Shown: positions 26,628 through 53,236, counted from the whole stretch's first letter. The stretch: DNA of 62,529 bases, filler included, from Trichosphaerium sp. ATCC 40318 (GCA_038496445.1; 3 parts of 3 records of this genome joined end to end with filler, not necessarily neighbours in it), one strand, 5' to 3'. The notes: a model not told the origin generated them from the letters alone. Made by a program: numbers and translations.

Positions 26628-29359
26628 ATGCCTCGTCTTACTTGGTGTTTGCTTTTTAGTATATACGCAGCGTACATCACTGGTACGGCTGATTAAAACA
26701 GCGCTCGAACTTTCCTTATCCCCAAATTTATCCAAAACATCACGTGACTCTTTCTAGGGCAGCAATTCATTGGCCGAACCGTTTTAACACCATTTAATTC
26801 GCCGTTTTGTACTAGTGTCAATCTAAAATCTCCAAATACCACCTTTGATCAGTACACGTTAATTACTTTTGGATTTAGCTGTAAGTCAAATAGTCTCTTA
26901 TTCTTCAAGTTTTTAAGGACCAAGGTGTCGATAGCCCAGTGGGGTCATGGGCAGGTTCGTCTACCTTGGGTTGCCGGTTCAAATCCCGTGCTGTCCATTT
27001 CTCCTTTCACTGAACGAACAGTCTACATTTCCTCAGGTGGTGCTGAGACGTTGTTCCATTCGTGCTGTGGATAGTAGAGGATGGATTCTCGAGAATTGTT
27101 TCAGTGACCAGTCCAGGCTGGGACCCTGGTTAGTCGCCATCAAACACTCACCCGTCCGTTCCAATCGCGGTGTACATCGGATAGGCTTTGCCTAAAAACA
27201 GCGATCATACTTAATACACTCAAAAACAGCTTGCGGTCCAATGTGAACCAAGCGAAAATGATAACAAAATTATTTCAACGAACTTGGTCAGTCTTCTAGA
27301 CTTGACAATGCTTCCAAGGGCGGAGGGTCACACCCTCTTGTGATTACGAACTGTCTAGTAGATAGCGTCCTTGTCTTCCCACATTGAGAGCGACAGGTGC
27401 AACTCCTGTATAAACCCTTGGTTAGCACCAATGTATGCTAGCCTTAGATTGGGTCGTTCAGTGCAATGTAGACAAATAAAAGTAAAGTATTCTTCAAGTT
27501 TTTCACAAACAAAAAGAAAAAGTTATTAATTTTTTTCAAGATCCTCCCGGTATTCCTTATACTGGCGTTGAGGTGCTAGATTCTAGGGTATTAGCAGTAA
27601 TGGCGAATACTGGACCAAATGGAGCTTCAGGGACTCTACACGAGATGAAAACGGACTGGGACTCGTCCACTACATGGTCTTCGTTTTCAAACAATGTGGG
27701 ACCAGGTAATCCTGTTTTGTTTATTGATATGTTCACTAATAACACAATAGTCGCGGGCATTGATTATGAAACCGAGATATCTGGGTCTTACAGTGACGTA
27801 CCTAACAATGAGGTTGCAAACATTACTGTTACTGATACTGTAAATAAATGGTTGAACCCTAACGTTAAGAATACAGGCTGGCTGATTAAAAGAGGTGAGA
27901 GTTTGATAAGATTTCTTTTTTAACTTGACTTTCTAGAGAACGCACATGATATCTTTGGATGTGAGGCTGTGTTAAGACCCCAACTAACAATGATCGTTGG
28001 ACCACTACCTTGGAATTTTACTTGTTTTACATACAAGGATCCAGGCACGTGATAATGCAGTCATTCGCTGAGTTGTTATCTATTTACCATGGATAAAATT
28101 AGATGGATTATTTCCATACCCGGAACCATTTATCGCTTACACTCGCCTGTGTGCTTTCTGCAAGGGTCCTGGACCCTTCGGAATTTTAGCTGCCGCTCTT
28201 ATTGGTGATGGTCAACTTGTGATAAATGATATAAGCGTGCGAACTACCAAAGTAGATCCTCTTCCAGACACTGATGGTATGTAATCTTTGTGGTGGCGTC
28301 TACACTTGTTTAATTTTTTTGAAAGTTGGCTATTGCGGTACTATACCTCCGGATCTCCAAACGAGAGAGGTAAGTGTGACCTTCGCGTACGTAGTGACTT
28401 TTTTGGACAGTGTTTTACCCGCTTTGAATTACCTTATAAGATTGTAGGACTAAACGTAGTGTAAATTTAGAGATTGATACTACAGGGTACACTACAAAGC
28501 TTCCTGAAGAAATAGGTAAAATTAAGTCGGTTGTGGTACATTTAATAGAAGATAGCTTGTCGATCATTTGAGTGTGAGAATACACGAGTATTAATCAATG
28601 GTACCATTCAAGGACAGCTATTAAAAGGGGAGTCTTTAGTAGTTAGAAATGATGTATTGATCAATGGTAATTTCAGTGTACAAGGTATTGACCAAGGCTT
28701 CATTCTTTCTTCTTTCTGTTAATTTTCTTTCACAAAAAGGTCAAATCAAAATTGAATCAACAGAAACTGTAATCACTATCGAGGGATGTGTTTCAGCAAC
28801 AAATGGTATCAATATTCAATTGAACGAAAACGAGACATATGTAGAAGGACAACAAATCATTGAACTATTTACACCTTGTGACATTGATGTACGAAATCAT
28901 TTTTATTGATAATTTTTTTTGTAAAGATGACCACCTCCAATTAACACCATGTTTAGAACACAAGTTTAATTTTGACAGGTGGCAATGCAGAGGTCCGGAT
29001 TATAATTTTGGAGTTTCTTTGTTAGTTAACTATTGTTTTAAATATAGAGAGATTGTGCAAAACTACTTGCTGAATCAAGCCCAACAACATCAGGGATTGC
29101 TTTAACGATTTTAGTTGATGACAGCGGTTGCGGTGGTGGTGATTCTTCATCATCGTCTTCTTTCAGTGACAATGTACATATAATCGTTCCAGTTATTGTT
29201 GTTGCTGTTGTTTTGGTGGCAATTATCATTGCAGCAGCTCTTGCTTTCTACAGGTAACTTTACTTTCAAAACGCAAAGCTTGCTTTTCTTATTATTTTCT
29301 TAAGATGGAAAAGATTGCATAGATTTTCATTACCTTCTCTTGGTAACAGTAGCAGTTAA
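26628..29359 (+). CDS. type I membrane protein with a DNRLRE-like extracellular domain
   Basis: Signal peptide MPRLTWCLLFSIYAA. LHEMKTDWDSSTTWSSF...ITVTDTVNKWLNPNVKNTGWLIK. Single TM IIVPVIVVAVVLVAIIIAAALAFY and a short basic tail. Confidence 0.65.
26915..27487 (+). mobile_element. tRNA-headed SINE-like retroposon (573 bp) inside an intron
   Basis: Perfect 16-bp TSD TATTCTTCAAGTTTTT (26899-26914, 27488-27503). A box TAGCCCAGTGG at 26932-26942, B box GGTTCAAATCC at 26976-26986. A-rich tail and no internal T4 run. Confidence 0.85.
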
Positions 29360-29598: not shown

Positions 29599-29741
29599 TG
29601 TAAGGCGGAAAGTCGACATGAATCACATTGATTAACCCGGAAGGTGCCGGAGCACCTACTTAATGTAATAAGTCCTTAAAGGACACAATAAACCAGACCC
29701 AAGCTTAGTACAACTACTCACGAGTACCTTACCCTCTTACA
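29599..29741 (+). repeat. 5' LTR
   Basis: TGTAAGGCGG...CCCTCTTACA, identical by eye to 36549-36691. Confidence 0.95.
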
Positions 29742-29792
29742 TTTGGCGACACGCAGCAGTCTTTGATCTACATAAGTCACGGAGATCATAAG

Positions 29793-32700
29793 ATGGAGAC
29801 AGGGAACAAGGATGATAACGATACGTTACTAGATGACTATAGCATGGGATATAATTATCAGGATAACATATTACCGCCACATTTGGACACTAGTTTGAAT
29901 GAATTAATTAACACAGCCAAGGATAAAAGCTTACGGGATAACAAGCAAGCGACGAAAGATGGAAAGCGATCCGACACCGACGATGATGACTCCGAAGATG
30001 GGGAGCTAGAAAGACCAGTACGCAATATAAAACAACAGTCATACAGCCCGGAAAGAAGCGAACGGGATACGGAGTCTAGAAAAAGAAGAAAAATATCACG
30101 TGAAGACTCCGATAGCGAATCGAGCAACGAAGAAAACGACATTCGACAGATGGAGAAGTTAGAATTACAACAGAGATCGATTCAATGACAAATGGAGCAA
30201 CTGCGACAAACGGTGGCACGAAAACGAAGTCGGAACAGATCACCAGTAGCTACGTCAACTCCAGCTAAAAGACGGAGAACAGAAGCATTATCTATGGTAT
30301 CGGAACGACCGAAGCAAGAACCAGAGAAGAACAGCTCACCCCACAACAACAGAGAGATGGATGAAGCAGAATATGAATCACGGAGTACTATGGGAGAGTA
30401 TATTAAAGAAGAGAAGAAAAATATTATTGCAGTAGAGGATTCAGACGAAGAAAGGGATGATACTTCAAGAGATAGCATCAGCAAAGGATTGCCGAGCAGA
30501 CGATATATGGAGACCATTAGTGATGACTATTGTACGGAAGAAGAAAGACAAGCTATTTGTAACTTCTTGCCGCACGGAGTCAAAGGGAGTGATGGCAATT
30601 GCATCGGAAACGACTGGCACGATTGTGAAGGTAAATTATCCAGCATAGGCAACATCGCTAGTTCTTTCACAACATTCGGAGACGGCAAGATGTCATCGGT
30701 AGGATTGGATAAATACCTCACGGGCGTACAACACATGGCGAACGGATTCAATCTGGGCAAACGAGGATATATATTCGCATTAAGAATTTTGGCAAAAGGA
30801 AAGGTCAATGATTTATTGAGTAAAGATAAATATACATTCGACCCGGTGGCAGCGGTATTGGCATTGATACGTGCGTACAGCCCAACAATACAACGTAAGC
30901 AGGCGCGTATAATGCTGGAAGATCTGAAGCAAACAAAGGATCAGAGCATAGAAGAATACAGAGCGTTAGTAGATAAGTACGCGAAACTAGGACAAGTATC
31001 GAAGGCGAGACAGTACGGAGAGTTCTACAGAGGGTTATTATCAACGCTGAAGCTCAAATTGGAAGTGAAATTCGGCGACAATCCAGAGAAGTATATATTC
31101 GAGAAGGTATTAAAATACATCACGGGAGTAGAAGAAGCGAAGAAGGTTAAGACGTTCGCACGCAATAGAGACAACAGAAGAACGTCTCATACACAGGAGG
31201 TTAACATAATTAAGACCACGAAGGTTGGAAGCAAGCGTAAATGGCAAAACGATAAAAAGAGAGAAGAAGATAAAGAACGGAAGCTATGGAAAAAGCGAGA
31301 ATTAAATAGGAATAAGGAAAGAGATACCAGATACACTGAGACAAGAGATAAAGGAAGATTCGATCGAGATGTACCATACCAACAGGGAAGATACGCACAG
31401 AGAGGTCAACAAAAAGGATACAGAGGAAGATACAGAGGAGGATATCGAGGAGGATACCGAGGAGGATATCAAAGAGGATATCAAGGAGGATATCGAGGAG
31501 GATACAGAGGAGGATATGACAGAAGAGATACGCAAGAGCGTAGAAATTGGCAAGATAACAGAGAGAGAGAGGAGAGATGATGGAACAGAGGGGGAGAGGA
31601 TAGAACAAGAACGAGAGGTAGAGGTAACACAGACGTGGTGTGTAGTAGATGCAAAGGATACTTTCACACGGCTAAAGAGTGCCCAGTTAAACGCGAAGAT
31701 GTGTTTGTTTCGGACGAGTGTAAACGTCCTAATAAAAGCATATGGAGCGGTTCAAATTATAAAGTAGCACGTTTGTTTACCGGCCACACATGTGAGAACA
31801 ATAGATTCGAACAGCAAGAGAAGAATAAGATAACAGAAGAACAACAAGATAAGATAAAAAAGGTTGTTAACGAGGAAAGACCAACCTTCAAACACAAAAG
31901 GAGTTTCACTACCAAAGAGAGGGTAGAGGAGAGAAATAACAATCTAAAACACATTAAGGTTAGAAACGACGACACAGTAAACATAGTGAACAAAGAATAT
32001 AAAGGAAAATTTAATTTCGCAGTAACTACAACTAGAACGTTGGTGGGAAAGATCAAGATGATCAAGACAGTGTTAGATTCGGGTGCCTCTTGTAGTATTA
32101 TTGACCTTGCATTAGTAAAGAGGTTAAAAAGAAACGGAAGAATATTTAAGGAACACGACCAACCAGTGTACACAGCTAACAATTCAACACTGAACGTTGT
32201 AGGAACAACTACAGTACCAATTACATTCGAAACACTTAAGAAGAACGTAAACTGCTTTGTAGTCAAGAACTTCCGATATCTGTTATTATTAGGAACGAAT
32301 ATGATGAAGGCGTTCGGCTTGTCGATATCATTCAACAAAGAGACAGTCAAGAACGAGATTGGTGAAGAAATAAGGATTACATACACGAAAGAAAAAGCAG
32401 AAAAGGCGGAGGCTGCGAACGTGATGACAAGCAACAGGATTAAGATACCAAAGTATTCACAAGTAATGTTTTGGGTTAATCTGACAACACCTGTGTCATT
32501 CAAAGAGGGAATAGTAGAAGCACATAAGGAAGACGAGTTTGACGGACACAATTATTTATTAAAAAGATTTGGAGTACAATTAGCGAGAACATGCGGAAGA
32601 GTAGTGAAGTCAAAGGTACCGGTACAAGTGATGAATATGACAAACAAAGCAAAATTCATACCAGCGAAATGCAATCTAGCGAGATTCACACCGGTAACGG

Positions 32701-35700
32701 AAGAAGACGAAGTATCAGTACTAGATATAGATTATACAAATGAGATAAAGAAGATGAAAGAGGAAGAGAAACAAGTACAGGAAGAAGATATTAAGAAAGC
32801 GAAAGATTTATTTAAAATGGAAGGATCTAAGCTAACAGAGGAGCAGAGAGAAAAAGCATACAGGTTCATGGCAGGACATCTGGATAGATTCACATCCAAG
32901 TTGAAGAAGCCAGCGAACGCGAAAGGAATGGAACACCATATTGAAACGGAAGAAGGAAAGAAGCCAGTACACATACCATATAGACCACTTAACCCACATA
33001 AGAGAGCTATAGTAAGAGAAGAAATGGAGAAAATGTTAGAGCAAGGAGTGATACAACCGTCAAAGTCACAATGGTCAGCGCCAGTAGTTTTGGTTAAGAA
33101 AAAGGATGGATCATGGCGCTTCTGTATAGATTATAGAGCGCTAAATAAGATTACAAAGAAAGATGTGCATCCATTACCAAGGATAACAGAATTACTGGAG
33201 GCGCTGGCTAGAGCGAAATACTTCAGTTTGTTCGATGCAATTTTAGGGTACTGGCAAATCATGATGTCAGAAGAAAGCAGACCTAAGACAGCGTTTGCGA
33301 CACCCTGGGGTTTGTACGAATGGTTAGGAATGCCTTTCGGTTTGAAAAATGCACAGGCTACGTTCCAAAGGCAAATGAATTTGATGTTATCCAGACTTCT
33401 CTGGCAGATGTGCCTTTGAGGTAATAATGCTGAAAATAGGAGCAAACATCCCTATGGTACGTCTACGCTTTGAAAAAATCAAAATCTAAAAAACAAAGTG
33501 TAGATGTACCATATCATAGGGATGTCTGCTCCTATTTTCTAATTTTTTTGGCTTTTTTCAATCTATCACCACTTTGTTACGTTGATGATATCATAGTATT
33601 CAGTCAGAGTTTTGAAGAGCACCTAGTGCATCTTAAACTCATGTTTGACCGCCTGGAAGAGCACAATGTAATGCTTAAAGCTTCGAAGACTGTGCTTTTT
33701 AAAGATGAGGTAGAGTTCTTGGGACACGTCGTGTCGGCGAATGGTATTGCAACAAATCCTAGAATTATCAAGTCGATAGACGAGGCACCACCACCTACCT
33801 GCATCGCCGAATTGGAACGTTTCCTTGGGATCACGGGATATTACAGAAGATTCGTACCTAACTACGCACAGTGGGCACACCCGCTTAATCAATTGAAACA
33901 CAAGGGTACAATATGGAATTGGACGACGACAGAACAAAAAGCATATGAGAAGTTGAAGCAGTCGTTGACAACAACACCAATATTACGGCATCCAGACTTC
34001 ACACTACCGTTTGAAATACACGTAGATGCATCAAAGGTAGCAGCAGGAGCGACGCTAGTACAAAAGGTGAATGGGAGAGAACATGTAGTAGCATACTACA
34101 GTAAAACATTCAACGCTGCTCAACAGAATTACTCAACAATTGAAAGGGAAACATTGGGAATAATATTAGCGATTAAGGAGTTCGCTGGATACATATCATT
34201 TTCACAATTTAAACTAATAGTTTATACAGATCATAAACCACTGGAGTACATCCAGAATTTGCAAAACCCAAGAGCGCTGGTAGCGTATTGGTTATTAGAA
34301 TTGCAAAATTATGACTTTAAATTAATATATAAACCCGGGAAAAAGCATTTGGACGCGGACGCACTCACGCGTCCACCTCTGGCCAGAGTAAATACCTTAG
34401 ATAATAAGGAAATAATGCAAACAAACAAAGGAGAACAATTATTATTAATAACAAAAGGATTATATGACGGGACGATAGAAAATGAAGAAGCGGTCACAAA
34501 GAAGAATGAATTCACGGAATGGCAACCGTACATAGTAAACATATTAGAGAAGCTAGCACCTATCAACTGGAGCACTGCTCAGAGGGAAGACGGAGAAGCG
34601 TCGGCATACATTGAGTTCCTCACCAAGGGAAGAATTCCACAATGGGTTCAAAAACAATACGGATTTAAGAAGTCGATATTTATTACAAAGGCGAGGGTAC
34701 TAAGATACGATGAAAATACAAATATCCTGTACCACGTGAAGAATAGTATGGCACGGATTAACCTAAAAGATAAACAATTTCAAATCTACGTACCAGCGTC
34801 ATTGCAGAACTTAGTGATGAGAACTTGTCATGATATGCCTTTCGCAGGCCATTTCGGATTCATCAAAACTTATGATCGCGCTTCAAGGAGATTCTACTGG
34901 CCTCAAATGTACTCTGATGTTAAGGAATGGTGCGATTCCTGTAGAAAATGTCAGAAGGCCAAGACTCCTCGTCAACCAAAAGGAGGATTCGCAGTTTCGT
35001 TTCCGATTCTAGAACCAATGGAGTTAATAGCAATGGATATAGTAGGGCTGTTACCTACAACAGCGAGAGGACATAAATATTTATTAGTGATAACAGATCA
35101 CTTTACAAAGTGGACTGATGCGTATCCGTTAGCGAGTCATCACGCTACGGACGTAGCACTAGTATTCATAAAAGAATTCTGTTTTAGATATGGAATGCCA
35201 AAACAGGTATTGACGGATCAGGGAAGAGATTTCACAGGAAAATTCATGAACAGAGTATACGAAGCGTTATACATCAAACCAGCAAGGACGACAGCATTTC
35301 ACCCGCAAACAGACGGACAGACGGAGAGATTCAATCACACAATCGTAGAAATATTAAAGTCATTTGTGAACGAAAGTCAAAATGACTGGGACTATTGGAT
35401 ACCATACGCACTCTACGCATACCGGACGGCGATACATCACGCAACGAAATACTCACCATTCGCGCTAATGTTCGGAAGGGAACCGAGATTACCATTAGAT
35501 ATGGCGACAGAAGAGAAAGTACAGATACCAGATAAATATAATATAATATAATATAATATGGCACATTGGGCGGAAGTATTAGCACATAGACTAAGACATG
35601 CATATCAAATCACGAAGAAGGCAATATTAAAGGCTAAAAAGGACCAAGCGAGATACTACAACAAAAGAAGGAGATGGGTAGACTTCAGAGAAGATCAACT

Positions 35701-36385
35701 AGTATGGCTAAGTGTACCATACAAGAAGGAAAAACACGGGAAATTTACATGCAAATGGAGAGGACCATATGAGATATTAAGAGTGATGGGACAGAACACA
35801 GTAATGTTAAAGCTACCAGAAGACAGTCAAATGAGTAGAGTGATAAACGTAGAAAGAATTAAACCATTTATTGATTCATTCTTAAGACCAGAAGAATATA
35901 TAGAAGAAAAGTATGAGAAATTCGAAGACGAAGATGGAAACATTAGATTAGTAGGAGACGAAGATTACGTAGAGAAAGCAGAGATGACGAAGAAAGATGT
36001 AGAAAGAATGATGAAGAAAGATATCGGAGAAGTTGAAAGTTTGACGAATGAAATAAAGAAAACAGAGGGAGTAACACCGACTAGAAGAAGAATAACAAGA
36101 TCAAGAACAGCACACAGAACGGAAATGCTAAGAAGAATATTAAAAGACATAGCGGCAGCGGCACCGAGATTAGAGATGAAAGAGATAAAGAAAAGTATAA
36201 AGGATATAATGGGAGCAGGATCACCATATGTTAGAGACGGAACAACACAAGATAAATTAATGGCGCAAATGAAGAATTGCAGCACGAAGGGCGATCTACG
36301 AGATTGGTTAGATTACGTAATAGAGAACTTTGATAATATATTCGCATTGGACATAGCATTATCATTGAGTGGAGATCACACTTAG
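29793..36385 (+). pseudogene. gag-pol polyprotein, disrupted
   Basis: CCHC knuckle CSRCKGYFHTAKEC, protease LDSGAS, RT (WRFCIDYRALN, MPFGLKNA, YVDD), RNase H (VDAS, ERE, TDH), integrase HHCC/DDE and GPY. In-frame TGA at 30186 and 31578, an insertion at 33419, and TAA at 35549. Confidence 0.92.
33419..33571. mobile_element. 153-bp hairpin (MITE-like) insertion in RT
   Basis: Flanked by duplicated CTTTG (33414-33418, 33572-33576). Inverted arms at 33432-33472 and 33494-33539. Removing it restores WQMCLCYVDDIIVFS. Confidence 0.85.
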
Positions 36386-36548
36386 GAGCAGAATCGACCT
36401 CCAAGACAACTTGGTAAATTTGGTTATGAAGGTTTCCATGCTGCCTAAGTAGATCCACGAAGAAAACGAACAGAGAAGGAGTAGAAGAAAGATTTATTGA
36501 ACAAGAGGCTATGACGTGGAAGTCATAGCTAAAGGAAAGGGGAGTTCT

Positions 36549-36691
36549 TGTAAGGCGGAAAGTCGACATGAATCACATTGATTAACCCGGAAGGTGCCGG
36601 AGCACCTACTTAATGTAATAAGTCCTTAAAGGACACAATAAACCAGACCCAAGCTTAGTACAACTACTCACGAGTACCTTACCCTCTTACA
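36549..36691 (+). repeat. 3' LTR
   Basis: Identical to the 5' LTR and followed by the GTTA TSD. Confidence 0.95.
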
Positions 36692-37131
36692 GTTAAACCA
36701 AAGACAAACTTAGAGCTTAGCTCTGTAAACGCTGTTTATAAAACTCAATTGCGATGCATTAACTTAAAACATTGAGTAAACTAGTTCAAATTCACTATGT
36801 AGTTCATGATTGTAACTTCTTGGTGATGTGTAAAAGTAGAATGGTTTCAAGAAGTTTGAAAATTAAAAATGCATGGAGAGCTCTAGGAACTTTCGCATTC
36901 AAATAATGCTCAAAGTGAATCTCTATTTCGCTTTAGAATGCTGAAAGCAAGCCTACATGTGCCTTGTTATGCTGCAGAATAAAGTCAAAGCGTGTTTATT
37001 TAGATTTACAGGAGTTACAAAAGGTACATATATATTTTATTTATTGTGGGATGCGTTTCTCTGAAATCCTATTTGTTGAATAGTATTTACATGAAACACA
37101 TTCATAACATTCCTCCCTGTTTAGCTTGAAG

Positions 37132-40085: not shown

Positions 40086-40409
40086 AGAACACATACCTAA
40101 AGCAGGCGTCTATGATGGTGAATAGTGAAAACAAAAAACCCACAGTCAAAAGAGTTAAAAACGGCAAGTTTTTATAATTATATTTATTTGACAGGACAGT
40201 TTTCTATTAACCACATGTACCTTCTACCATGAAAATTAAATCTGTGAGTGCAAGTGAGTATACAGCACCACCAGCGCAAGGTTTCAACCTAAAACAAGCA
40301 ACTTTAGTCAAATGTCAGTAAAGAGTAACTACGAGTAAAAAAAATAAAGTAAGTCACCAAAGAAAACAAAGCAGAATTTCTACAAGTAAAAGGCGGCAAT
40401 CACTTGATG

Positions 40410-42835
40410 TAGTCTGTTGTTGGAGCATCAATTGTAGGAGCGTCTGTAGTAGGAGCATTCATAGTTGGAGTTCAGTTGTTGGTGCCTCAGCAGTAAGCGC
40501 AGTAGTAGTTGGAGCCTCTGTTGTTGGAGCAGTAGATGGAGCGTCAGTACTTAGGGCTTAAGTAGTTGGCGCTTTCGTTGTAGGAGCCTCTGTAGTTGGT
40601 GTCGTAGTTGTCAGAGCTTCTGTGGTTGGACCTCTGTAGTTGGCGCTGTAGTTGTCGGAGCTTCAGTGGTAAGAGCCTCAGTTGTAGGTGCATTTGTGGT
40701 TGAAGCCTCTGTAGTAGCATCCGTAGTTGGAGTTCAGTTGTTGGTGCCTCAGCAGTAAGCGCAGTAGTAGTTGGAGCCTCTGTTGTTGGAGCAGTAGATG
40801 GAGCGTCAGTACTTAGGGCTTAAGTAGTTGGCACTTTCGTTGTAGGAGCCTCTGTAGTTGGTGCTGTAGTTGTTGGAGCTTCAGTGGTCGGTGCATCTGT
40901 AGTTGGAGCTTTGTAGTTGGTGCTTCAGTTGTTGGAGGTTCCGTATTGTAGGAACCTCTGTAGTTGGTGCATCTACAAAGAAAGTTAGTTGCTTTAGAAA
41001 GTAAAATACAAAGTACCAGTTGTAGGTCTTTTGTTGTTGGTGCATCAGTCGTAAGCGCATCCGTGGTAGGAGCTTCAGTCGTAAGAGCTCTTGTAGTTGG
41101 TGCCTCAGTTGTGGGAACCTCCACAGTAGGCGCAGAAGTAGGTGCTACAGTTGTAGGAGCCTCAGTCGTTGGCACTTCAGTAGTTGGCACATTTGTGGTT
41201 GGAGTGTTTGTGATTGGCGCTTCGGTGGTAAGTGCATCTGTAGTCAGAGCCTCTGTTGTTTGAGCCTCTGTTGTTGGTGCATCTGTAGTAGGCGCTACAG
41301 TGGTAGGAGCCTCAGTAGTTGGTGTTTCAGTCGTAGGTGCATCTGTCGTTGGAGCTTCGGTTGTAGGCGCATCCGTAGTTGGTGCCTCTGTAGTTGGCGC
41401 TTCTGTGGTTGGAGCAGTGTAGTTGGTGCTGTAGTGGTTGGAGCTTCAGTGGTAGGAGCCTTCGTTGTTGGAGCTTCAGTTGTTGGAGCCTCTGTAGTTG
41501 GAGCTGCAGTCGTAGGAGCTTCGGTTGCAGGTGCCTCCGTTGTTGGAGCTTCAGTTGTTGGGGCTTCGGTGGTTGGAGCTACGGTTGTTGGGGCAGCAGT
41601 AGTTGGCGCATCAGTTGCAGGAGCTTCAGTTGTAAGAGCTTCTGTAATTGGTGCTGCAGTCGTAAGAGCCTCCGTAGTAGGCGCTACAGTGGTAGAAGCC
41701 TCCGTTGTTGGAGCCTCTGTAGTTGGAGCCTCCGTTGTTGGAGCATCTGTAGTTGGTGCTTTTGTTGTTGGAGCCTCTGTTGTTGGCGCTTCAGTTGTTG
41801 GTGCTTCTGTTGTTGGCGCTTCGGTGGTAGGTGCATCTGTAGTAGGTGCTTCTGTAGTTGGTGCATCTATCACAGTTAGAAGGAAAAAGGTAAAAATATC
41901 GATCAAGTACCAGTTGTAGGAGCTCCAGTTGTTGGTGCTTCAGTTGTAGGAGCCTCTGTAGTTGGTGCTTCAATCGTTGGAGCTTCGGTTGTAGGTGCCT
42001 TCGTTGTTGGAGCCTCTGTAGTAGGAGCATCTGTAGTTGGAGCTTCAGTGGTAGGAGCATTCATAGTTGGAGCTTCAGTTGTTGGGGCTTCAGTGGTTGG
42101 CGCAGCTGTTGTTGGTGGTTCTGTTGTTGGAGCATTTGTAGTAAGTGCATCTGTAGTTGGTGCTACTGTAGTTGGTGCTTCTACAAATAAAGTAAGTTCC
42201 CATATAGAAAGTAAACAACAAAGTACCAGTTGTGGCGCTATAGTTGTAGGTGTTTCTGTTGTTGGAGACTCTGTCGTTGGAGCTACAATGGTTGGAGCCT
42301 CTGTTGTTGGAGCATCTGTAGTAGGTGCAGCAGTTGTAAGTGCATCTGTAGTTGGCGCAGCTATCATAGTTAGGTGGAAAAAGGTAAAAATAATATCGAT
42401 CAAGTACCAGTTGTAGGTGCATCTGTGGTAAGAGCCTCTGTTGTTGGTGCTTCTGTAGTTGGAGCCTCTGTAGTCGGTGCTTCAGTTGTTGGTGCAGCAG
42501 TAGTTGGAGCCTTTGTAGTCGGTGCTTCAGTCGTAGGTGCATCTGTAGTAGGCGTTACAGTGGTAGGAGCCTTCGTAGTTGGAGCTTTTGTGGTTGGAGC
42601 CATGACGTTCTACAAAACTGAGCAGTATGATTCTTACACACTTGTCTACCCTTTGCATCAGACTTCTAAATACCGTGTTACCTCCTGCATAAATAAATAA
42701 AATGAAAACCATACTGAGTCACTAGCTAGCTAGAAAACACGAACATATATCATGCGTACCTGTACTGTTGAGGTGTATGCTGGCCACACCACGATTTATA
42801 ATGGGCGTCACTCCAGTCTGTACGTTGGTACTCAT
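40410..42835 (-). pseudogene. mucin-like (APTTE)n Thr/Pro-rich surface protein with a decayed 3' part
   Basis: 15-nt codon-degenerate repeat encoding A-P-T-T-[E/D/A/V/K]. Duplicated introns. Frameshifts and stops in 40460-41420. Confidence 0.75.
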
Positions 42836-46300: not shown

Positions 46301-47760
46301 CGTGATGAAAGAATTTGCATTCTGAGCTTCGTACAGCATACTACCTACCTTTACCAGCGTCCAAAATGAGCTGTTTCGCATTCTTATCATAGTTGTTTCT
46401 TGAAAGCGAATTACAAGCACTCACGACATCGTTAACGCTATCTCTAATACATAAAGCATTACGCATTAGAGCATTTTTGTAGAGATAACGTAATTTAGGA
46501 AAATAAATTGTAATTACGCACCTGAGCAGGGCTGAAACTCAACAAGGCATTTTTGGACAATGCCTAGGCATTTTCATCAAATAATGCCTTATTTTTTACA
46601 AAAATGCCTAGTTTTTGCCTCATTCAAAAAGGCAAATACAGGGCAATGCCTTATTTTTTGCTCCAAAAATGCCTTATATTTGATGAAAAATGCTTGCATC
46701 TGGTACACAAGATTGCAATGGTTTTGCTTGCATATTTTAAGGAATTATGCCTTCAAATTAGGGCATAACTCATGCATCAATGCCTTATTTTGAAGGCAAA
46801 AAGAAAGCATTGTCATAGTCTACAGTGCCTAATAAACCAGGCATTTTCAGGTAATAACACAACTATTTATTTTATAATACAGTACACATACAATACACAA
46901 AACTCCTAAGTCCACATTTGAAAAAACCTTAAAGAAAATATGAGATGGTGTAGAAAAAAAAAAAAAAAAACTTACCTTGTAGTGTTAGAATTCCGCGGTC
47001 CTGGAAATATCGCGGAGTTCACTCCTACTGCTGTTGTAGGTGCAATAGGGCGCTGCGGTTCGTTTGGCGGTGGTTTCGTCTAATTTCATGAATTACTAAG
47101 AGCGCTAGGTGCCTATCTATATAAAACGTCAGTAGGTGATGTGAAAAAAAAAGTGTAAAAGTTGTTTGACTGTTACTTACCTTAAACCACTTCCTTAATG
47201 TGATCAGTCCTATGATATAGTATAGGCAATGCCTTATATATGAATTAAAATACAAGGCATATAATGCTTAAAAAAATAAGGCATAATAAAGGCATAAAGT
47301 ACTTGCAATATAGGGCATTACTTGATTTTATGCAATGCCAAAAAATGCAATACAAGGCATTACCTGATTTTATGCAATGCCAAAAGATGCCCAAAAATGC
47401 CTGGTTTTAATGCCTTTTTGATGAAGGCATTGCCTTTTTGTAAAAATGCCTTATTTTATTGGGCATTGCCAAATGCAAATGCCTTGATTTTGCCATCTAA
47501 TGCCAAATGTTAGGAATATGCATCATTTTTTAAGGCAATGCCTAGCTGAGTTTCAGCCCTGCGTTTGAAGCCATGCTCGTTTAGCGCCTCCAGCAAGTGT
47601 AACATTTGATAATAATAATTTTCATAGTCGTACAACCTAAACAAGCATTTAGTGACGATTGCAACGGTAGAATTCTTTTAGTGCGATAACGTACCGTTAC
47701 CTGCAAGATGCTGTAAGTATAAGGTTAAGAAAGTGATACCTTAAATCAAATCCATCTAAA
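43345..47760 (-). CDS. vinculin/talin/alpha-catenin-like helical-bundle protein, multi-exon, interrupted by an insertion; 5' end unresolved
   Basis: Repeated amphipathic helices (KDPNLRKKLQDAIDNLRDKLG, DARKRLQDAIDRL, AQANLAI-type segments) across many short introns. Confidence 0.5.
46527..47561. mobile_element. non-autonomous TIR element (hAT-like CAGGG ends), 1035 bp
   Basis: Perfect 15-bp TIR CAGGGCTGAAACTCA / TGAGTTTCAGCCCTG, with many subterminal AATGCC/GGCATT motifs. There is no clean TSD. Confidence 0.85.
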
Positions 47761-47905
47761 CAGGTCTGAAGTACGTAACTAGGGTATTTAACACTATGCA
47801 CCTAAACTTTCATTAGCATTTGATTTGAATAATAAAGCACAAAGCAAAAGAAAAGGTACACGTTAGGTTACATAACATATGTGTAGTGACTATTTTTGCA
47901 TGTTG

Positions 47906-47933
47906 CAAAAAACCTCCAATTGGAGGTTTTTTG
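47906..47933. repeat. perfect 28-bp palindrome upstream of the AlkB-like/transposase gene pair
   Basis: CAAAAAACCTCCAATTGGAGGTTTTTTG. Confidence 0.85.
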
Positions 47934-48228
47934 TCATTTTTTCACCAGAGCATATTGTCGCAATGCGCTTTTTGCGCGTAATAAGCGCCATTGCGAGGGT
48001 TTAGAGAAAAAACATTCAAAAATTATTTTTGTTTTTTTGAATTGCTCTGATAAGTACCCGAACAACCATTTTTCATTAAAAAACCTCATATTAGCCATTT
48101 GTGTTTTGGCGGCTAACTGTTTTTGAGATTATTTTTTTTTTTTTGGTTTTTTCTTCCATTGCCGCTCATTTTTGAATTTTCTTTATTTAGTACTTAACTA
48201 TACCATTGTAGGTAACAACACTTAGCTC

Positions 48229-51147
48229 ATGTCCATCATACGAGACACATCCAAGCGGTACATAGTGAGTTTTTTTTGTTGGTGCTAAAATGAGGTGTAG
48301 AAAGCGAGTTTCAAGATCCAACTCCCCCAAAACAAGATCGAAAAAACCACACATACAAGATCTAAAGGTAACGTGTCAAGTAGATGATATAAACTCCAAG
48401 GTACGGTGACATGTTTTATTGTAAACGTCAAAATCTTAATTATTTTCTTCAGACAGCAAATGCAAAGAACCGCAATCAATTTACAATACAAAGAGACAAG
48501 ATTAAAAATGCTATCATTAATCTCAAAAGTTTATTAGAAGTTACAGTGGCAAATGGAGGCGCGAAAATATTAGAAGAGCCATGGGCAAAAAAATTAAACT
48601 TAAAAGCAACATTATTGTCCAAAACACATACAGAGTGGATAGTACAAAGTGTGTTGCCTGCAAATATAAAATCACCAACTGCATACACAGTAAAAAAGCT
48701 TAATCAGGTACGAGAAGTCTCTTTACATCAAGCTTTTCTTATTTTTTTCCAATACAGGTGAAACGTAAAGCTGAGAAGCACAATATATCTGGTGCTGCCT
48801 TGGTGCGTATGGCTTTGATTGTACGAAACAAAAGGCAACAAGGTAAGCTTATATTACCAATCAACAACTTATCGTTATTGTAGCTAACAAGAGGCGTTCT
48901 GTTGTTCCTTATGGCACGTTAAAATCAAGCATTATGCCAAAAGATATAACCATGGCATTTGATTATCTCAAGTGCAACACAATGCCTACTTTAACTCATT
49001 TTCAAGAAGGTACATATAAAACAAATACAATGACACGATTACCCTCTAATGTATTATACAAGAGAATGAAGAAACAGCTCACGACAACATTAAAAGTGTT
49101 ACTATCAAAAACACTTCTAATTCTACAAAGCTGAATATAGATTGGAGAGGATCTGTATCACAATTGTGGCTTACAACATATGTTATACCTGACGAATTGT
49201 TGTTTGTGTGTAGACAATTTGCTGGACAATTCAAAAATGATCTCAAACACACGGTACGCAAATCCATTGTCTTAACCACGTGTTTACTTTGTTAGTTTTG
49301 GTCTAAGCCCGGTGATTTGTGGGAAGCAAACATTATGAGGAGGTATAAGACCCAAAATTATGGTAAAGTTGTTTGTGTTACCCCATATTCTGGTAAGTTG
49401 CTTATTTGTTTGGTATCGTGATTAACATCAACCATAAAGATAAGTTTTGTGGCAACTCTGAGGTTAAGATACCCATTCAACTAAATGAAGCCAAGTGGAA
49501 TCAATTATTGCCTATTATAAATGCTCATCACAACATTACAACCAACGCAAAAGCTTTAAATGACAGTGAAATTGTGGACATGGTCATAGAGTTAAAGGTG
49601 AGTTTATACAAAAAAATGGTGTTTGCAATGGTTAAATGTAGTTGTTTATAGGAGTGGCCTACAGGCAAATCAAGCTTAAGAATGCATAGTGATGGAGACA
49701 AAGGCCAATTGCATAGCGGCTCTGGTATAACATGTTTTGGTTTTGCTTTGAAGGATGGTAAAAAAGAAAAACTTGGTAAAACCATAATCATTCAAACAAG
49801 CACGTGCTTCATATTTATTTTGTAGTATGGTAATATTTACTTTAGATTCTGAAAAGTTTAAGGTTAATGGCACTAACTTTGTGTGGGCCTTAAGCAACAT
49901 TGACCCTCCATCAGCTGATGTCCAAAATGATGGCGATGGATTTGGTCCGGGGGTAGTGCGACATTCTGTTGAAGTTGTGGTGCCTAAAGGTGTCCGTTAC
50001 TTTTCTTTAATTGTTAGACATTTCATTCGGACTCTGCCTGAAATAAGTGACCTTGCTATTGCAAAACAGAAGCGTTTGGTGGGGTTGTCTTCCAAAAGCT
50101 ATGCTAAACACACCAAATTGAAACACTCTCTATATGTTTGTCCACAAAACCTGCGCTATAAAGCCAACAACCACTTTCTTCTATCTTCTTCTTATAAATT
50201 ACCTCAAGATGATGATAAAGAAACAATCATACACCCTGGAACTTTGTTAATTTACAATTTACCTGGGTGCGTTTATTTGTAATTGCATAGTTGATTTAAT
50301 ATTCTTTTCAAGCTTGTGTGAAATGGGTTTGATTGCTTCTTATCAAAGAACTTTTCAAGGACATACAGGAGTAGGATTAAAAGTGGTAGTTAAAAAAGAG
50401 TGTGTTGCCAAAGAGTACATCAAGACTTTACTCAGTTACATTTAATGTTATTGCAGATATTTTTCAAGTGATTGGGCGGTTGTATACTCTACTGCAACAG
50501 AAATATCTCAAGATAATGTTAGTGCGCTCATTAAAAAGTCACTGTATTTGCAACGGAATGTCGACAATGAAGATGAAGGTTGTACTTTTTTTATAACCCC
50601 CTGCACTCTATTAAAACAACATGTTGATGTTGATTATGATTCACTGGGCTGTACAAGCTTGACATAGACTTATGTTTTGTTGACATTGTATTGTAGGCGC
50701 CCATCAACTTGGAATTGTGTCAAGGTGGTATGTTCATGGCTTTCTTTATTATGGAAAACAGCCTGTTGTGGTTTTTAGAAAAATCAAACGGCTAGGGAAT
50801 AATCTCTCTCTTCACCTCAATTGCAAATGCTGCACGCTGCGTCCATTATTCTTGCATATATTTAGTGATGTACCCTCTGACAAGAACATGTCTGATGAAG
50901 ATATAATAACTAAAGAAAGTTCTCATTGGAATACAATCAAACAATTAGATGGTACGATTTTTTTTTTTGCAACTTTTTTTTCTAATGCTCCTTTTATTAC
51001 AGTATTACCCACACTAGTAAATCAGTTTGCTTACACTGGAAAGCTATCCAAAGAAGACAAAAGAAAATGTGATTGTACGTTGGTTGTAAGAGTATTAAAC
51101 GTCTAAATTGTTTTATAGGTTTAGATAAATTGTGTAGGAAACAATAA
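48229..51147 (+). CDS. multi-exon protein with a central AlkB-like 2OG-Fe(II) dioxygenase domain
   Basis: Spliced core: MRRYKTQNYGKVVCVTPYS...AKWNQLLPII...ELKEWPTGKSSLRMHSDGDKGQLHSGSGITCFGF...FVWAL...VRHSVEVVVPKGVRYFSLIVRHF. HxD at 49685-49693, distal H at 49962-49964, R at 49995-49997 and 50016-50018. Confidence 0.7.
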
Positions 51148-51208
51148 ATAAATTTATGCTCATTAAGTGGAGTTTTTTTTCCTTAATTGTAATCAACAAC
51201 AAGCAACA

Positions 51209-53236
51209 ATGGCTAACGTGTATTGTGACGCTTGTAAGACATGGTATACATGGAGACATTATCATTACAGGCACTTAAAATCTAATAAACATACAACGGC
51301 GACCATAAAGCTAGGTACATGTACAAAATACCTCAAATGTACTTAGTTAATTATAGGAATGGGCAAGCGGAATAGAGACTTTTCTCAAGGAAACAACAAT
51401 ACCATTGGCAAAGCAAAGAAACGGATTAGAACTCATGATATTAATTTGGGAGATTCAGCAAATGCCAGTGAAAGTGTCGACCATCTGCTTGCTTTTAATC
51501 TAAATACTGATTGTGATGCCAATAGCAATGCAATAAGTCACAACAGTGACTCTGAAAGTCAAAGTAGTGTGGACAGTGGATTTAATGGCACTGGTGATGA
51601 GAGCAATGAAAGCAGTGTCAGCGACGGGTTTGAGGAACCAGTTTATTTAAGAGATGACAATACAAAGCTACCTTTAACAGATCTTCCTCACTTTTTAAGT
51701 GTTGGTGGTGAGGCTATGCGCAGTGGTGAGTTAACAGTAGCAATTAGTGTAGCATTAATTTGTTTGTTAAAGAATTCGGGCAGTTGTCTGATGAACAATG
51801 GAAAAAAGAACAAAGGCCTCCAGATTTTGAGCCAAGTGATGACTTTAACTCTGCCTCTCCTCAACAAAAGCTTGGTTATTTGTTGTTTGTGCTAAAGTTG
51901 GAACACAAGCTGTCTTTGGTTTTGTGTAAAAAAATTTTAGAGCTGTTCAACACTGCCTTGGTTCTTTTTGGACTTGATGCTAATGGTACGTAACATGCCA
52001 CATTGTGATTATCTCTTATGTTGGGTTTGTTAGGCACTGTGTCTGTTTCTGTGAACACATTGTTGAAAGAAATTGCTACAAAAGTACATTTACCAGTCGT
52101 ATGTGCCTTTGTCCTTGCTTATTGTTTTACATTAGTTTTTGCCTCAATTTCCACCTGAAATAATATCAGTGGACAAAAAAACCAAGTCAGACAAAGTTGT
52201 ATACATGACACAAGTTCCTTTTTACTCTCCATCAGAGCATATCAAAAGAGTGTTGTATTATTTGCCCACAAGAAACAGCATCGCTGAATGTATAACTGAT
52301 GGACCATCCACAATGCACACACACTATGAAGATGGAACTACAAAAGCAGAAAAGGTGTACAAAGGTCCAGAAACTGGGACCAATGTGAAAAAAGTGTTCG
52401 CAGATGTACTTGACATTTATGAGGCAGACAAAAACAACACTATTTTACTCCCAGGTATACTATACTTTATCTTTTGATTGTTTACTCACTGTTAATAAAT
52501 AGCATATATAAGCAAGGATGATTTTACATACGATAAAAAAGACAGTTTGGGACCTTTGTATATGGTTGTTTGGAATTTGCCTAACAGTGCCAGTGCTACT
52601 GGAAAAATGTTGTTGGCTGTGCTACCAAAGTGTTTGCATGAAGAAGATCTTTTGGAACATGTTGTAAATGATTTTTTAAAGGTGTACAATGGCATGAGAT
52701 GTTACATAAAAAGTGAACAAAAGGTACGGGCCAATTTTATTGGGTTTTTTTTACAATTTAATCCAAAAAATAGTACTTCACAGTGTATTTGAGGTTGTCT
52801 AAGATATTGGGTGATTCACCAGGCTCAAATAGATTGATATGTACAAAATCCTTCACTATTGATCAACTTATGTTACTTTTAGCAATGAGGAGTCCAACAT
52901 CTCATTATCCTTGCCGAATATGTAGAGTGCCAAAAAATGCCTTTCAATTAATTACAGAAGACAATGAGATTGTAACAGCCACAAGAAACACACTCCAAAT
53001 CCTCACCATGGCACATGAACACTCATATAGTGATCATATTAAAGATTGTTTTAGCATTCACAGGCAGGTGAGCAACAACCCACAAATTTAGTTTTACTTT
53101 AGATTAACTGGTATTTTTTTTTCTTTTAGTCTCCGTTCAGTAAGCTGTTGAACCATCACTTTGACTTTTTTTTGGATTCTCCATATTGTCCATTTCATAA
53201 CATCATATTGGGCATAGCTAAAAATGTGTTGGATGC
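51209..53236 (+). CDS. CMC (CACTA/EnSpm)/Plavaka-like DDE transposase with N-terminal C2H2 finger, truncated by a gap
   Basis: VYCDACKTWYTWRHYHYRHLKSNKH; YISKDDF; LGPLYMVVWNLP; ILGDSPGSNRL; HYPCRICRVPK; SPYCPFHNIILGIAKNVLD. Confidence 0.8.

Follow-up and report, generated by a model that had tools for sequence, protein, structure and literature searches.

Dioxygenase genes of the TET/JBP type have been described in eleven lineages of fungal DNA transposons including Plavaka and EnSpm, the carriers named being Kyakuja, Dileera, Zisupton, Plavaka, EnSpm, hAT, Harbinger, IS3EU, ESTA and Helitron (Kojima 2025, PMC12730594). The PE-type representatives of these transposon-borne TET/JBP proteins reach HHpred E values of only 1.4-19 (PMC12730594). 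In red algae, the PAG3 protein of Plavaka elements combines a ParB-like domain with a presumed oxygenase that depends on 2-oxoglutarate (2OG) (HHpred E 0.016), and captures by Helitrons have also been recorded (bioRxiv 10.1101/2025.02.11.637652). Here we analyze a stretch of 62,529 nucleotides, filler included, from Trichosphaerium sp. ATCC 40318 (GCA_038496445.1), referred to as the window in the following, and in particular two adjoining genes, A and B, in a 30-kb piece of it that ends at position 53236. Gene B is supported by sequence features as a DDE transposase of the Plavaka/EnSpm/RAG1 clade (CMCT). For gene A we tentatively propose, at slightly less than an even chance, that it is the accessory gene of a Plavaka-like element and encodes a diverged 2OG/Fe(II) dioxygenase, which could be AlkB-like, TET/JBP-like or of another type. 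The arrangement is most likely a further instance of transposon-borne 2OG oxygenases.

The region from 47.8 to 53.3 kb was translated in all frames before splice models were checked by script (Table 1). According to the initial annotation, gene A is broken up by about a dozen short introns. In line with this, the spliced frame is interrupted by 13 introns, all of the GT-AG type and 41-85 bp long, most of them with a YTRAY-like branch site 12-21 nt 5' of the acceptor. Splicing yields 728 open codons from the ATG at 48290 to the TAA at 51145-51147. The ATG at 48229, at which the gene had been assumed to start, is not joined to this frame, the first in-frame ATG being the one at 48290. The product begins with the basic N-terminus that had been predicted (16 Lys or Arg residues within the first 60 amino acids), and its C-terminal region is rich in Cys. 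At the stop density of 0.070 per codon that corresponds to this composition, the 140-codon exon would be open with a probability of 4e-5, and for three other exons this probability is below 1e-2. The GC content is 36.7% in the exons compared to 30.0% in the introns and declines over codon positions 1, 2 and 3 (0.43, 0.36 and 0.31). Gene A is a real protein-coding gene, or was coding until very recently. An Rfam scan of the piece gave no match.

Table 1. Positions of genes A and B and of their sequence motifs, counted from the first nucleotide of the window
Feature	Position	Strand	Details
Gene A	48290-51147	+	14 exons, 728 aa; manual splice model checked by script
Gene A, exons 1-7	48290-48367, 48453-48707, 48758-48842, 48884-49009, 49063-49253, 49296-49392, 49440-49597	+	
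Gene A, exons 8-14	49652-49775, 49846-50266, 50313-50414, 50457-50650, 50697-50951, 51003-51074, 51119-51147	+	
Lid-like segments of gene A (label of the initial annotation)	49338-49517	+	RRYKTQNYGKVVCVTPYS, aa 260-277, exon 6; WNQLLPII, aa 297-304, exon 7
Gene A, exon 8	49652-49775	+	EWPTGKSSLRMHSDGDKGQLHSGSGITCFGFALKDGKKEKL; W332 (49655-49657), candidate Fe(II) ligands H342 (49685-49687) and D344 (49691-49693)
Gene A exon 9, candidates for the distal His and the 2OG-binding Arg residues	49962-50018	+	within VVRHSVEVVVPKGVRYFSLIVRHF; H411 (49962-49964), R422 (49995-49997), R429 (50016-50018)
Spacer, gene A stop to gene B ATG	51148-51208	+	exactly 61 bp
Gene B	51209-53236	+	at least 8 exons, 564 codons open; truncated at 53236 by the end of the piece
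Gene B, exons	51209-51314, 51357-51725, 51773-51985, 52034-52098, 52136-52454, 52503-52723, 52774-53067, 53130-53236	+	splice model
Gene B, N-terminal C2H2 zinc finger	51224-51292	+	CDACKTWYTWRHYHYRHLKSNKH, aa 6-28; regular-expression match
Candidate DDE core of gene B	52517-53037	+	KDDF (D363/D364, 52517-52522), WNLP (aa 381-384), GDSPG (D445, 52813-52815), C478-x2-C481 (52912-52923), H514-x4-H519 (53020-53037)

The assignment of gene B, whose seven introns are likewise all GT-AG (37-62 bp), draws on three kinds of evidence that agree with each other and with the earlier description of a C2H2-finger transposase of the CMC/Plavaka type. Firstly, its candidate core has the motif order D...NLP...D...CxxC...Hx4H, which is shared with the DDE clade comprising Plavaka, EnSpm (CACTA) and Transib-RAG1. 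The C(2)C and H(3-4)H motifs are marks of EnSpm, Mirage, Chapaev, Transib, Plavaka and RAG1 (Kojima 2025, PMC12730594). Secondly, in a comparison of ESM Atlas features exon 7 was placed with clusters of Basidiomycota and Mucoromycota at scores of 0.97 (194 shared features) and 0.96. It groups with PF18759 Plavaka (0.96), PF02992 Transposase_21 (0.95) and the RNase-H, ZnC2 and ZnH2 domains of RAG1 (0.92-0.93), and the best named matches, ten of ten, belong to a single clan. Thirdly, a C2H2 zinc finger is found at the N-terminus. Pfam searches with seven single exons, PDB searches by phmmer (exons 6 and 7) and a word-based search with exon 7 remained blank; exon 5 had no match in the ESM Atlas, and relatives of exon 7 were found neither in the metagenome nor in the viral collections.

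The evidence that gene A may encode a dioxygenase comes from its motifs. A complete HxD...H...R...R signature had been reported for it, and every string quoted at that time is present in the spliced product. Besides the lid-like segments, these are EWPTGKSSLRMHSD, which contains H342 and D344, GITCFGF, VVRHSV with H411, and RYFSLIVR with R422 and R429. The spacing is dioxygenase-like, with 69 aa from HxD to the distal His and 11 and 18 aa from this His to the two Arg residues; the latter values are close to the 12 and 18 aa of ALKBH2/3. With AlkB/ALKBH proteins (PF13532, 2OG-FeII_Oxy_2) gene A shares the HxD...H triad and an aromatic-xx-G strand in front of HxD, W332 being at the position of AlkB Y122, and YG...Y.YS and W..L.P segments occur upstream, arranged as in the nucleotide-recognition lid of AlkB. 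The strict pattern [YWF]xxG-x4-7-HxD-x40-90-H-x8-24-R-x5-6-R was found in only 0.15% of 20,000 shuffled versions of the gene A protein and in one of 120 unrelated gypsy Pol proteins, compared to 194 of 200 bacterial AlkB proteins. In an AlphaFold model of exon 9 alone, which is all-beta and of low confidence (predicted local distance difference test score 43), the candidate residues H411, R422 and R429 lie on beta strands. Since the pattern was defined post hoc and the motifs had been spotted by eye within 53 kb of sequence, the signature is suggestive, above the trivial and short of conclusive.

A number of observations weigh against a dioxygenase. The strict pattern was written when the sequence of gene A had already been seen, and the bare HxD...H...R..R core is far less specific, occurring in 7% of the shuffles and in 31 of the 120 control proteins. 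The public databases were searched exon by exon. Pfam gave no match for seven exons of gene A at E values up to 10, and neither did a phmmer search of the PDB with exons 8 and 9. When the 139 aa of exon 9 were compared by phmmer to 1.84 billion cluster representatives, a single spurious bacterial repeat protein was obtained. In the ESM Atlas the best score of this exon was 0.47, whereas the transposase exon was recognized at once by the same method. Two scans of the metagenome collection and a scan of the viral collection also yielded no relatives of exon 9.

The whole spliced product of gene A was in addition compared with purpose-built profiles. For AlkB these were seeded with E. coli alkB and covered 120 enterobacterial proteins, a narrow set with at least 77% identity throughout, as well as 80 species loci (58-94% identity), 8 plasmid genes (33-45%) and 2 viral loci. 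The narrow profiles gave no signal. With the widest AlkB hidden Markov model (HMM) a full-sequence E value of 0.0075-0.0081 was obtained in a one-sequence search (P about 0.008). Of 3,000 shuffles 23 scored higher, and of the 120 control proteins none did. To the detriment of the dioxygenase assignment, this match, the single HMM hit of nominal significance, connects aa 112-172 of gene A to the N-terminal region of AlkB and thus lies outside the catalytic core, and the alignment of aa 230-450 with the wide AlkB profile (33-100% identity) by hhalign is not significant (P 0.23). This alignment maps W332, H342, D344, H411, R422 and R429 in a colinear manner to Y122, H131, D133, H187, R204 and R210 and, equally without significance, places W297 on the P-W-P-x-M-P block of AlkB. 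At two sites the residues themselves deviate: The N-x-Y of AlkB, a 2OG-binding motif located about 9-11 residues ahead of HxD, is replaced by K330-E-W332 with an offset of one residue, and the R-x5-R of AlkB (RYNLTFR), which contacts the C5 carboxylate of 2OG and the substrate, corresponds to R-x6-R (RYFSLIVR) in gene A, so that the spacing between the Arg residues is 6 instead of 5.

The profile for TET/JBP (PF12851), a family with conserved H, D/E and H residues, consisted of seven phage members and was anchored on gp2 of Mycobacterium phage Cooper (Pfam Tet_JBP, E 4e-6). It gave an E value of 0.15 in hmmsearch and P values of 0.16-0.30 in hhalign, this narrow profile being a weak test. The purpose-built profiles are small, and even AlkB and TET compared profile to profile reach only a P value of 0.054. 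In the profile tests neither AlkB nor TET/JBP is statistically supported for gene A, and it is the motifs that point to a dioxygenase.

The results of these searches bear on a different explanation, according to which gene A provides the transposon with an accessory or DNA-binding protein that is not an enzyme, akin to the second protein encoded by CACTA elements, and HxD...H...R...R is present by chance. We consider this rather unlikely, but it is favored by the finding that profile, PDB, language-model and exhaustive sequence searches recognize no dioxygenase family in gene A, by the absence of N-x-Y, by the frequency of the bare core in shuffled and unrelated sequences and by the combination of a basic N-terminus with a Cys-rich C-terminus. 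It is disfavored by the rarity of the stricter pattern that includes the [YWF]xxG strand, by the colinear placement of all six functional positions on AlkB in the hhalign alignment, even at a P value of 0.23, and by the fact that transposon-borne dioxygenases which evade searches are on record in the form of the PE-type TET/JBP proteins (PMC12730594).

A more specific version of the dioxygenase proposal is that gene A encodes a highly diverged AlkB-type demethylase, an eraser of N6-methyladenine, 1-methyladenine or 3-methylcytosine, that is carried as cargo by a Plavaka-like transposase or fused to its N-terminus. We judge this to be unlikely. The membership in the AlkB family that had been claimed for gene A was not sustained, as significance on the catalytic core was reached in no test and N-x-Y is not conserved. 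Apart from the deviations described above, gene A differs from AlkB by its much larger size of 728 aa and by flanking regions unrelated to those of AlkB.

The fungal transposon-borne TET/JBP genes resemble gene A in that a 2OG/Fe(II)-type accessory gene adjoins a transposase of the CMCT clade, in their proposed role in the escape from methylation-based silencing and, in the case of the PE-type, in being missed by ordinary sequence searches. Differences are the lack of a signal on the phage TET/JBP profile and the pair of Arg residues that follows the distal His, which in gene A is in an AlkB-like R-x6-R arrangement. PAG3 is likewise a weakly recognizable 2OG oxygenase encoded by an accessory gene, it belongs to a Plavaka lineage outside the fungi, and as in gene A a putative DNA-binding part lies N-terminal to the oxygenase. 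However, no similarity of gene A to ParB was detected in a comparison with the ParB protein of phage Cooper, and gene A is rich in introns. Furthermore, the red-algal Plavaka elements are 17-19 kb in size, and their PAG1 and PAG2 (methylase/SET) genes were not seen upstream of gene A in the piece. The novelty ascribed to the cargo in the initial annotation has to be toned down, since 2OG oxygenase cargo is known from fungi and red algae. Our literature searches yielded no AlkB-type transposon cargo.

The linkage of the two genes is close. They have the same orientation and the same style of short GT-AG introns, and the gap of 61 bp to a co-oriented downstream transposase that had been noted before was recovered exactly, with the stop of gene A ending at 51147 and the ATG of gene B at 51209. 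Moreover, the observed/expected ratio (o/e) of CpG is 0.51 in gene A and 0.29 in gene B, with a 1.3- to 1.5-fold excess of TG and CA, while it is about 0.8 in the flanks and 1.01 in a nearby young long terminal repeat (LTR) element. As both genes are depleted of CpG and enriched in TG and CA relative to the flanks, they share a history of methylation and decay. The depletion implies that the unit at 47600-53236 was subject to germline CpG methylation in the source organism. The CpG o/e is about 0.96 at 47.6 kb and decreases steadily along this unit until it reaches about 0.2 at 52-53 kb, matched by the TG/CA excess, and several of the remaining CpGs lie in GTACG intron donors.

Repeats upstream of gene A were limited to short AAAAAACCTC copies and a palindrome of 28 bp. 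The palindrome, CAAAAAACCTCCAATTGGAGGTTTTTTG at 47906-47933, is perfect, and three more copies of AAAAAACC(T/A)C are located at 48007, 48078 and 48341, that is, within 400 bp upstream of gene A to just inside it. The palindrome and these copies may act in the promoter or as binding sites in a subterminal position.

Not all features of the locus are those of a complete mobile element. In transposons of the CMCT clade the ends are CA...TG and the target-site duplications 2-5 bp long. Terminal inverted repeats around genes A and B were not found in the piece, the 3' end of the element being past the piece edge, and no catalytic Glu was identified in gene B up to 53236, beyond which it may lie; both points count against the proposed element. 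The first of them, together with the lack of a second copy of genes A and B in the 30-kb piece, would also suit a lineage-specific host gene, with or without an enzymatic product, that lies next to a (perhaps domesticated) transposase gene, with nothing mobile at the locus. The long intact frames of both genes despite strong CpG decay fit purifying selection on such resident genes, and an AATAAA at 51143 that overlaps the stop codon of gene A suggests that this gene may be an independent transcription unit. On the other hand, a spacer of 61 bp leaves little room for a separate promoter of gene B, exon 9 is unmatched among 1.84 billion proteins, so that gene A is no conserved orthologue of the ALKBH1-8 type, and the region is rich in transposable elements, among them the LTR element located at 29.6-36.7 kb and an element of 1 kb with terminal inverted repeats at 46.5-47.6 kb. 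Thus, a resident host gene appears quite improbable to us.

The short spacer is also compatible with a single transcription unit that encodes a dioxygenase-transposase fusion, or isoforms in the manner of En/Spm, if the donor at 51075 were used to skip the stop codon of gene A. The frame of gene B is open from 51167, and with either of two AG acceptors, after which the exon would begin at 51168 or 51204, the genes would be joined in frame across introns of 93 or 129 bp. This junction is predicted from the sequence, and an in-frame match is expected by chance in about one case out of three. The modeled last intron of gene A (44 bp) with its terminal exon suits the local intron size better, and the AATAAA at the stop of gene A also speaks for separate genes. 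We therefore regard a common transcription unit as very unlikely.

Returning to the proposal of a Plavaka-like element with a dioxygenase as its accessory protein, the locus would represent the 5' part of a DNA transposon of the Plavaka/EnSpm type, or a copy that became immobile recently, in a host that is probably a eukaryote with short introns and CpG methylation. Gene B would be the transposase of the element, using its C2H2 finger for DNA recognition. This finger would be followed by an RNase-H-like DDE core that contains the zinc modules typical of the clade, CxxC and Hx4H. Gene A, located 61 bp upstream on the same strand, would be the accessory gene and may move together with gene B. 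The basic N-terminus of its product is probably nuclear and nucleic acid-binding, the region of about aa 260-432 most likely adopts the jelly roll fold of 2OG/Fe(II) dioxygenases, and the Cys-rich C-terminal region would form a third part of the protein. In the predicted active site, H342, D344 and H411 would hold the iron and R422/R429 the 2-oxoglutarate. By analogy with TET/JBP and PAG3, the substrate of the enzyme would be a methylated base, either in the DNA of the element itself or in RNA, and by oxidizing it the enzyme would blunt methylation-based silencing.

Other parts of the window also contain repetitive or mobile sequences. An apparently young Ty3/gypsy LTR retrotransposon on the plus strand (29599-36694) has a CpG o/e of 1.01, unlike the depleted genes A and B. 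Its LTRs are direct repeats of 146 nt (29599-29744 and 36549-36694) with 99% identity, and its long open reading frames (ORFs) encode gag, protease-reverse transcriptase, RNaseH-integrase and SH3-like parts; the best protein relatives of the Pol part are only 35% identical. A non-autonomous element of 1 kb (46526-47562) is bounded by terminal inverted repeats of 26 bp, GCAGGGCTGAAACTCAACAAGGCATT, which are 92% complementary. It contains many subterminal AAGGCATT/AATGCCTT repeats and no long ORF, and its CpG o/e is 0.34. On the minus strand at 40400-42700, a long tandem array with a period of 15 nt encodes a mucin-like Thr/Pro repeat, (A/E)PTTE, and is broken by short intron-like spacers. Finally, an ORF on the plus strand (27573-27923) weakly matches the disaggregatase-related repeat domain PF06848 (E 1e-4, under the gathering score), a domain that is unusual on a eukaryotic contig.

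Overall, if the fold of gene A is not confirmed, the locus would simply be a Plavaka-like element with two genes, one of which encodes an orphan accessory protein. To count as a new variant, it would have to be demonstrated that gene A has the fold and the substrate of an AlkB-type enzyme. Epigenetic erasers carried by transposons, such as the fungal TET/JBP proteins and the red-algal cassettes of 2OG oxygenases and methylases, are a recently recognized form of counter-defense. A plant example of epigenetic counter-defense by a transposon is VANC. In the organism studied here a demethylase would have a target, because the strong CpG decay of precisely genes A and B shows that the host methylates this unit. 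If gene A encodes an active dioxygenase and travels with the transposase, the strategy would be known from one more lineage and perhaps involve a further enzyme family and a further substrate. If gene A were to prove a true AlkB, DNA transposons would use AlkB, independently of TET/JBP, as a second family of dioxygenases to erase silencing or damage marks of the host.

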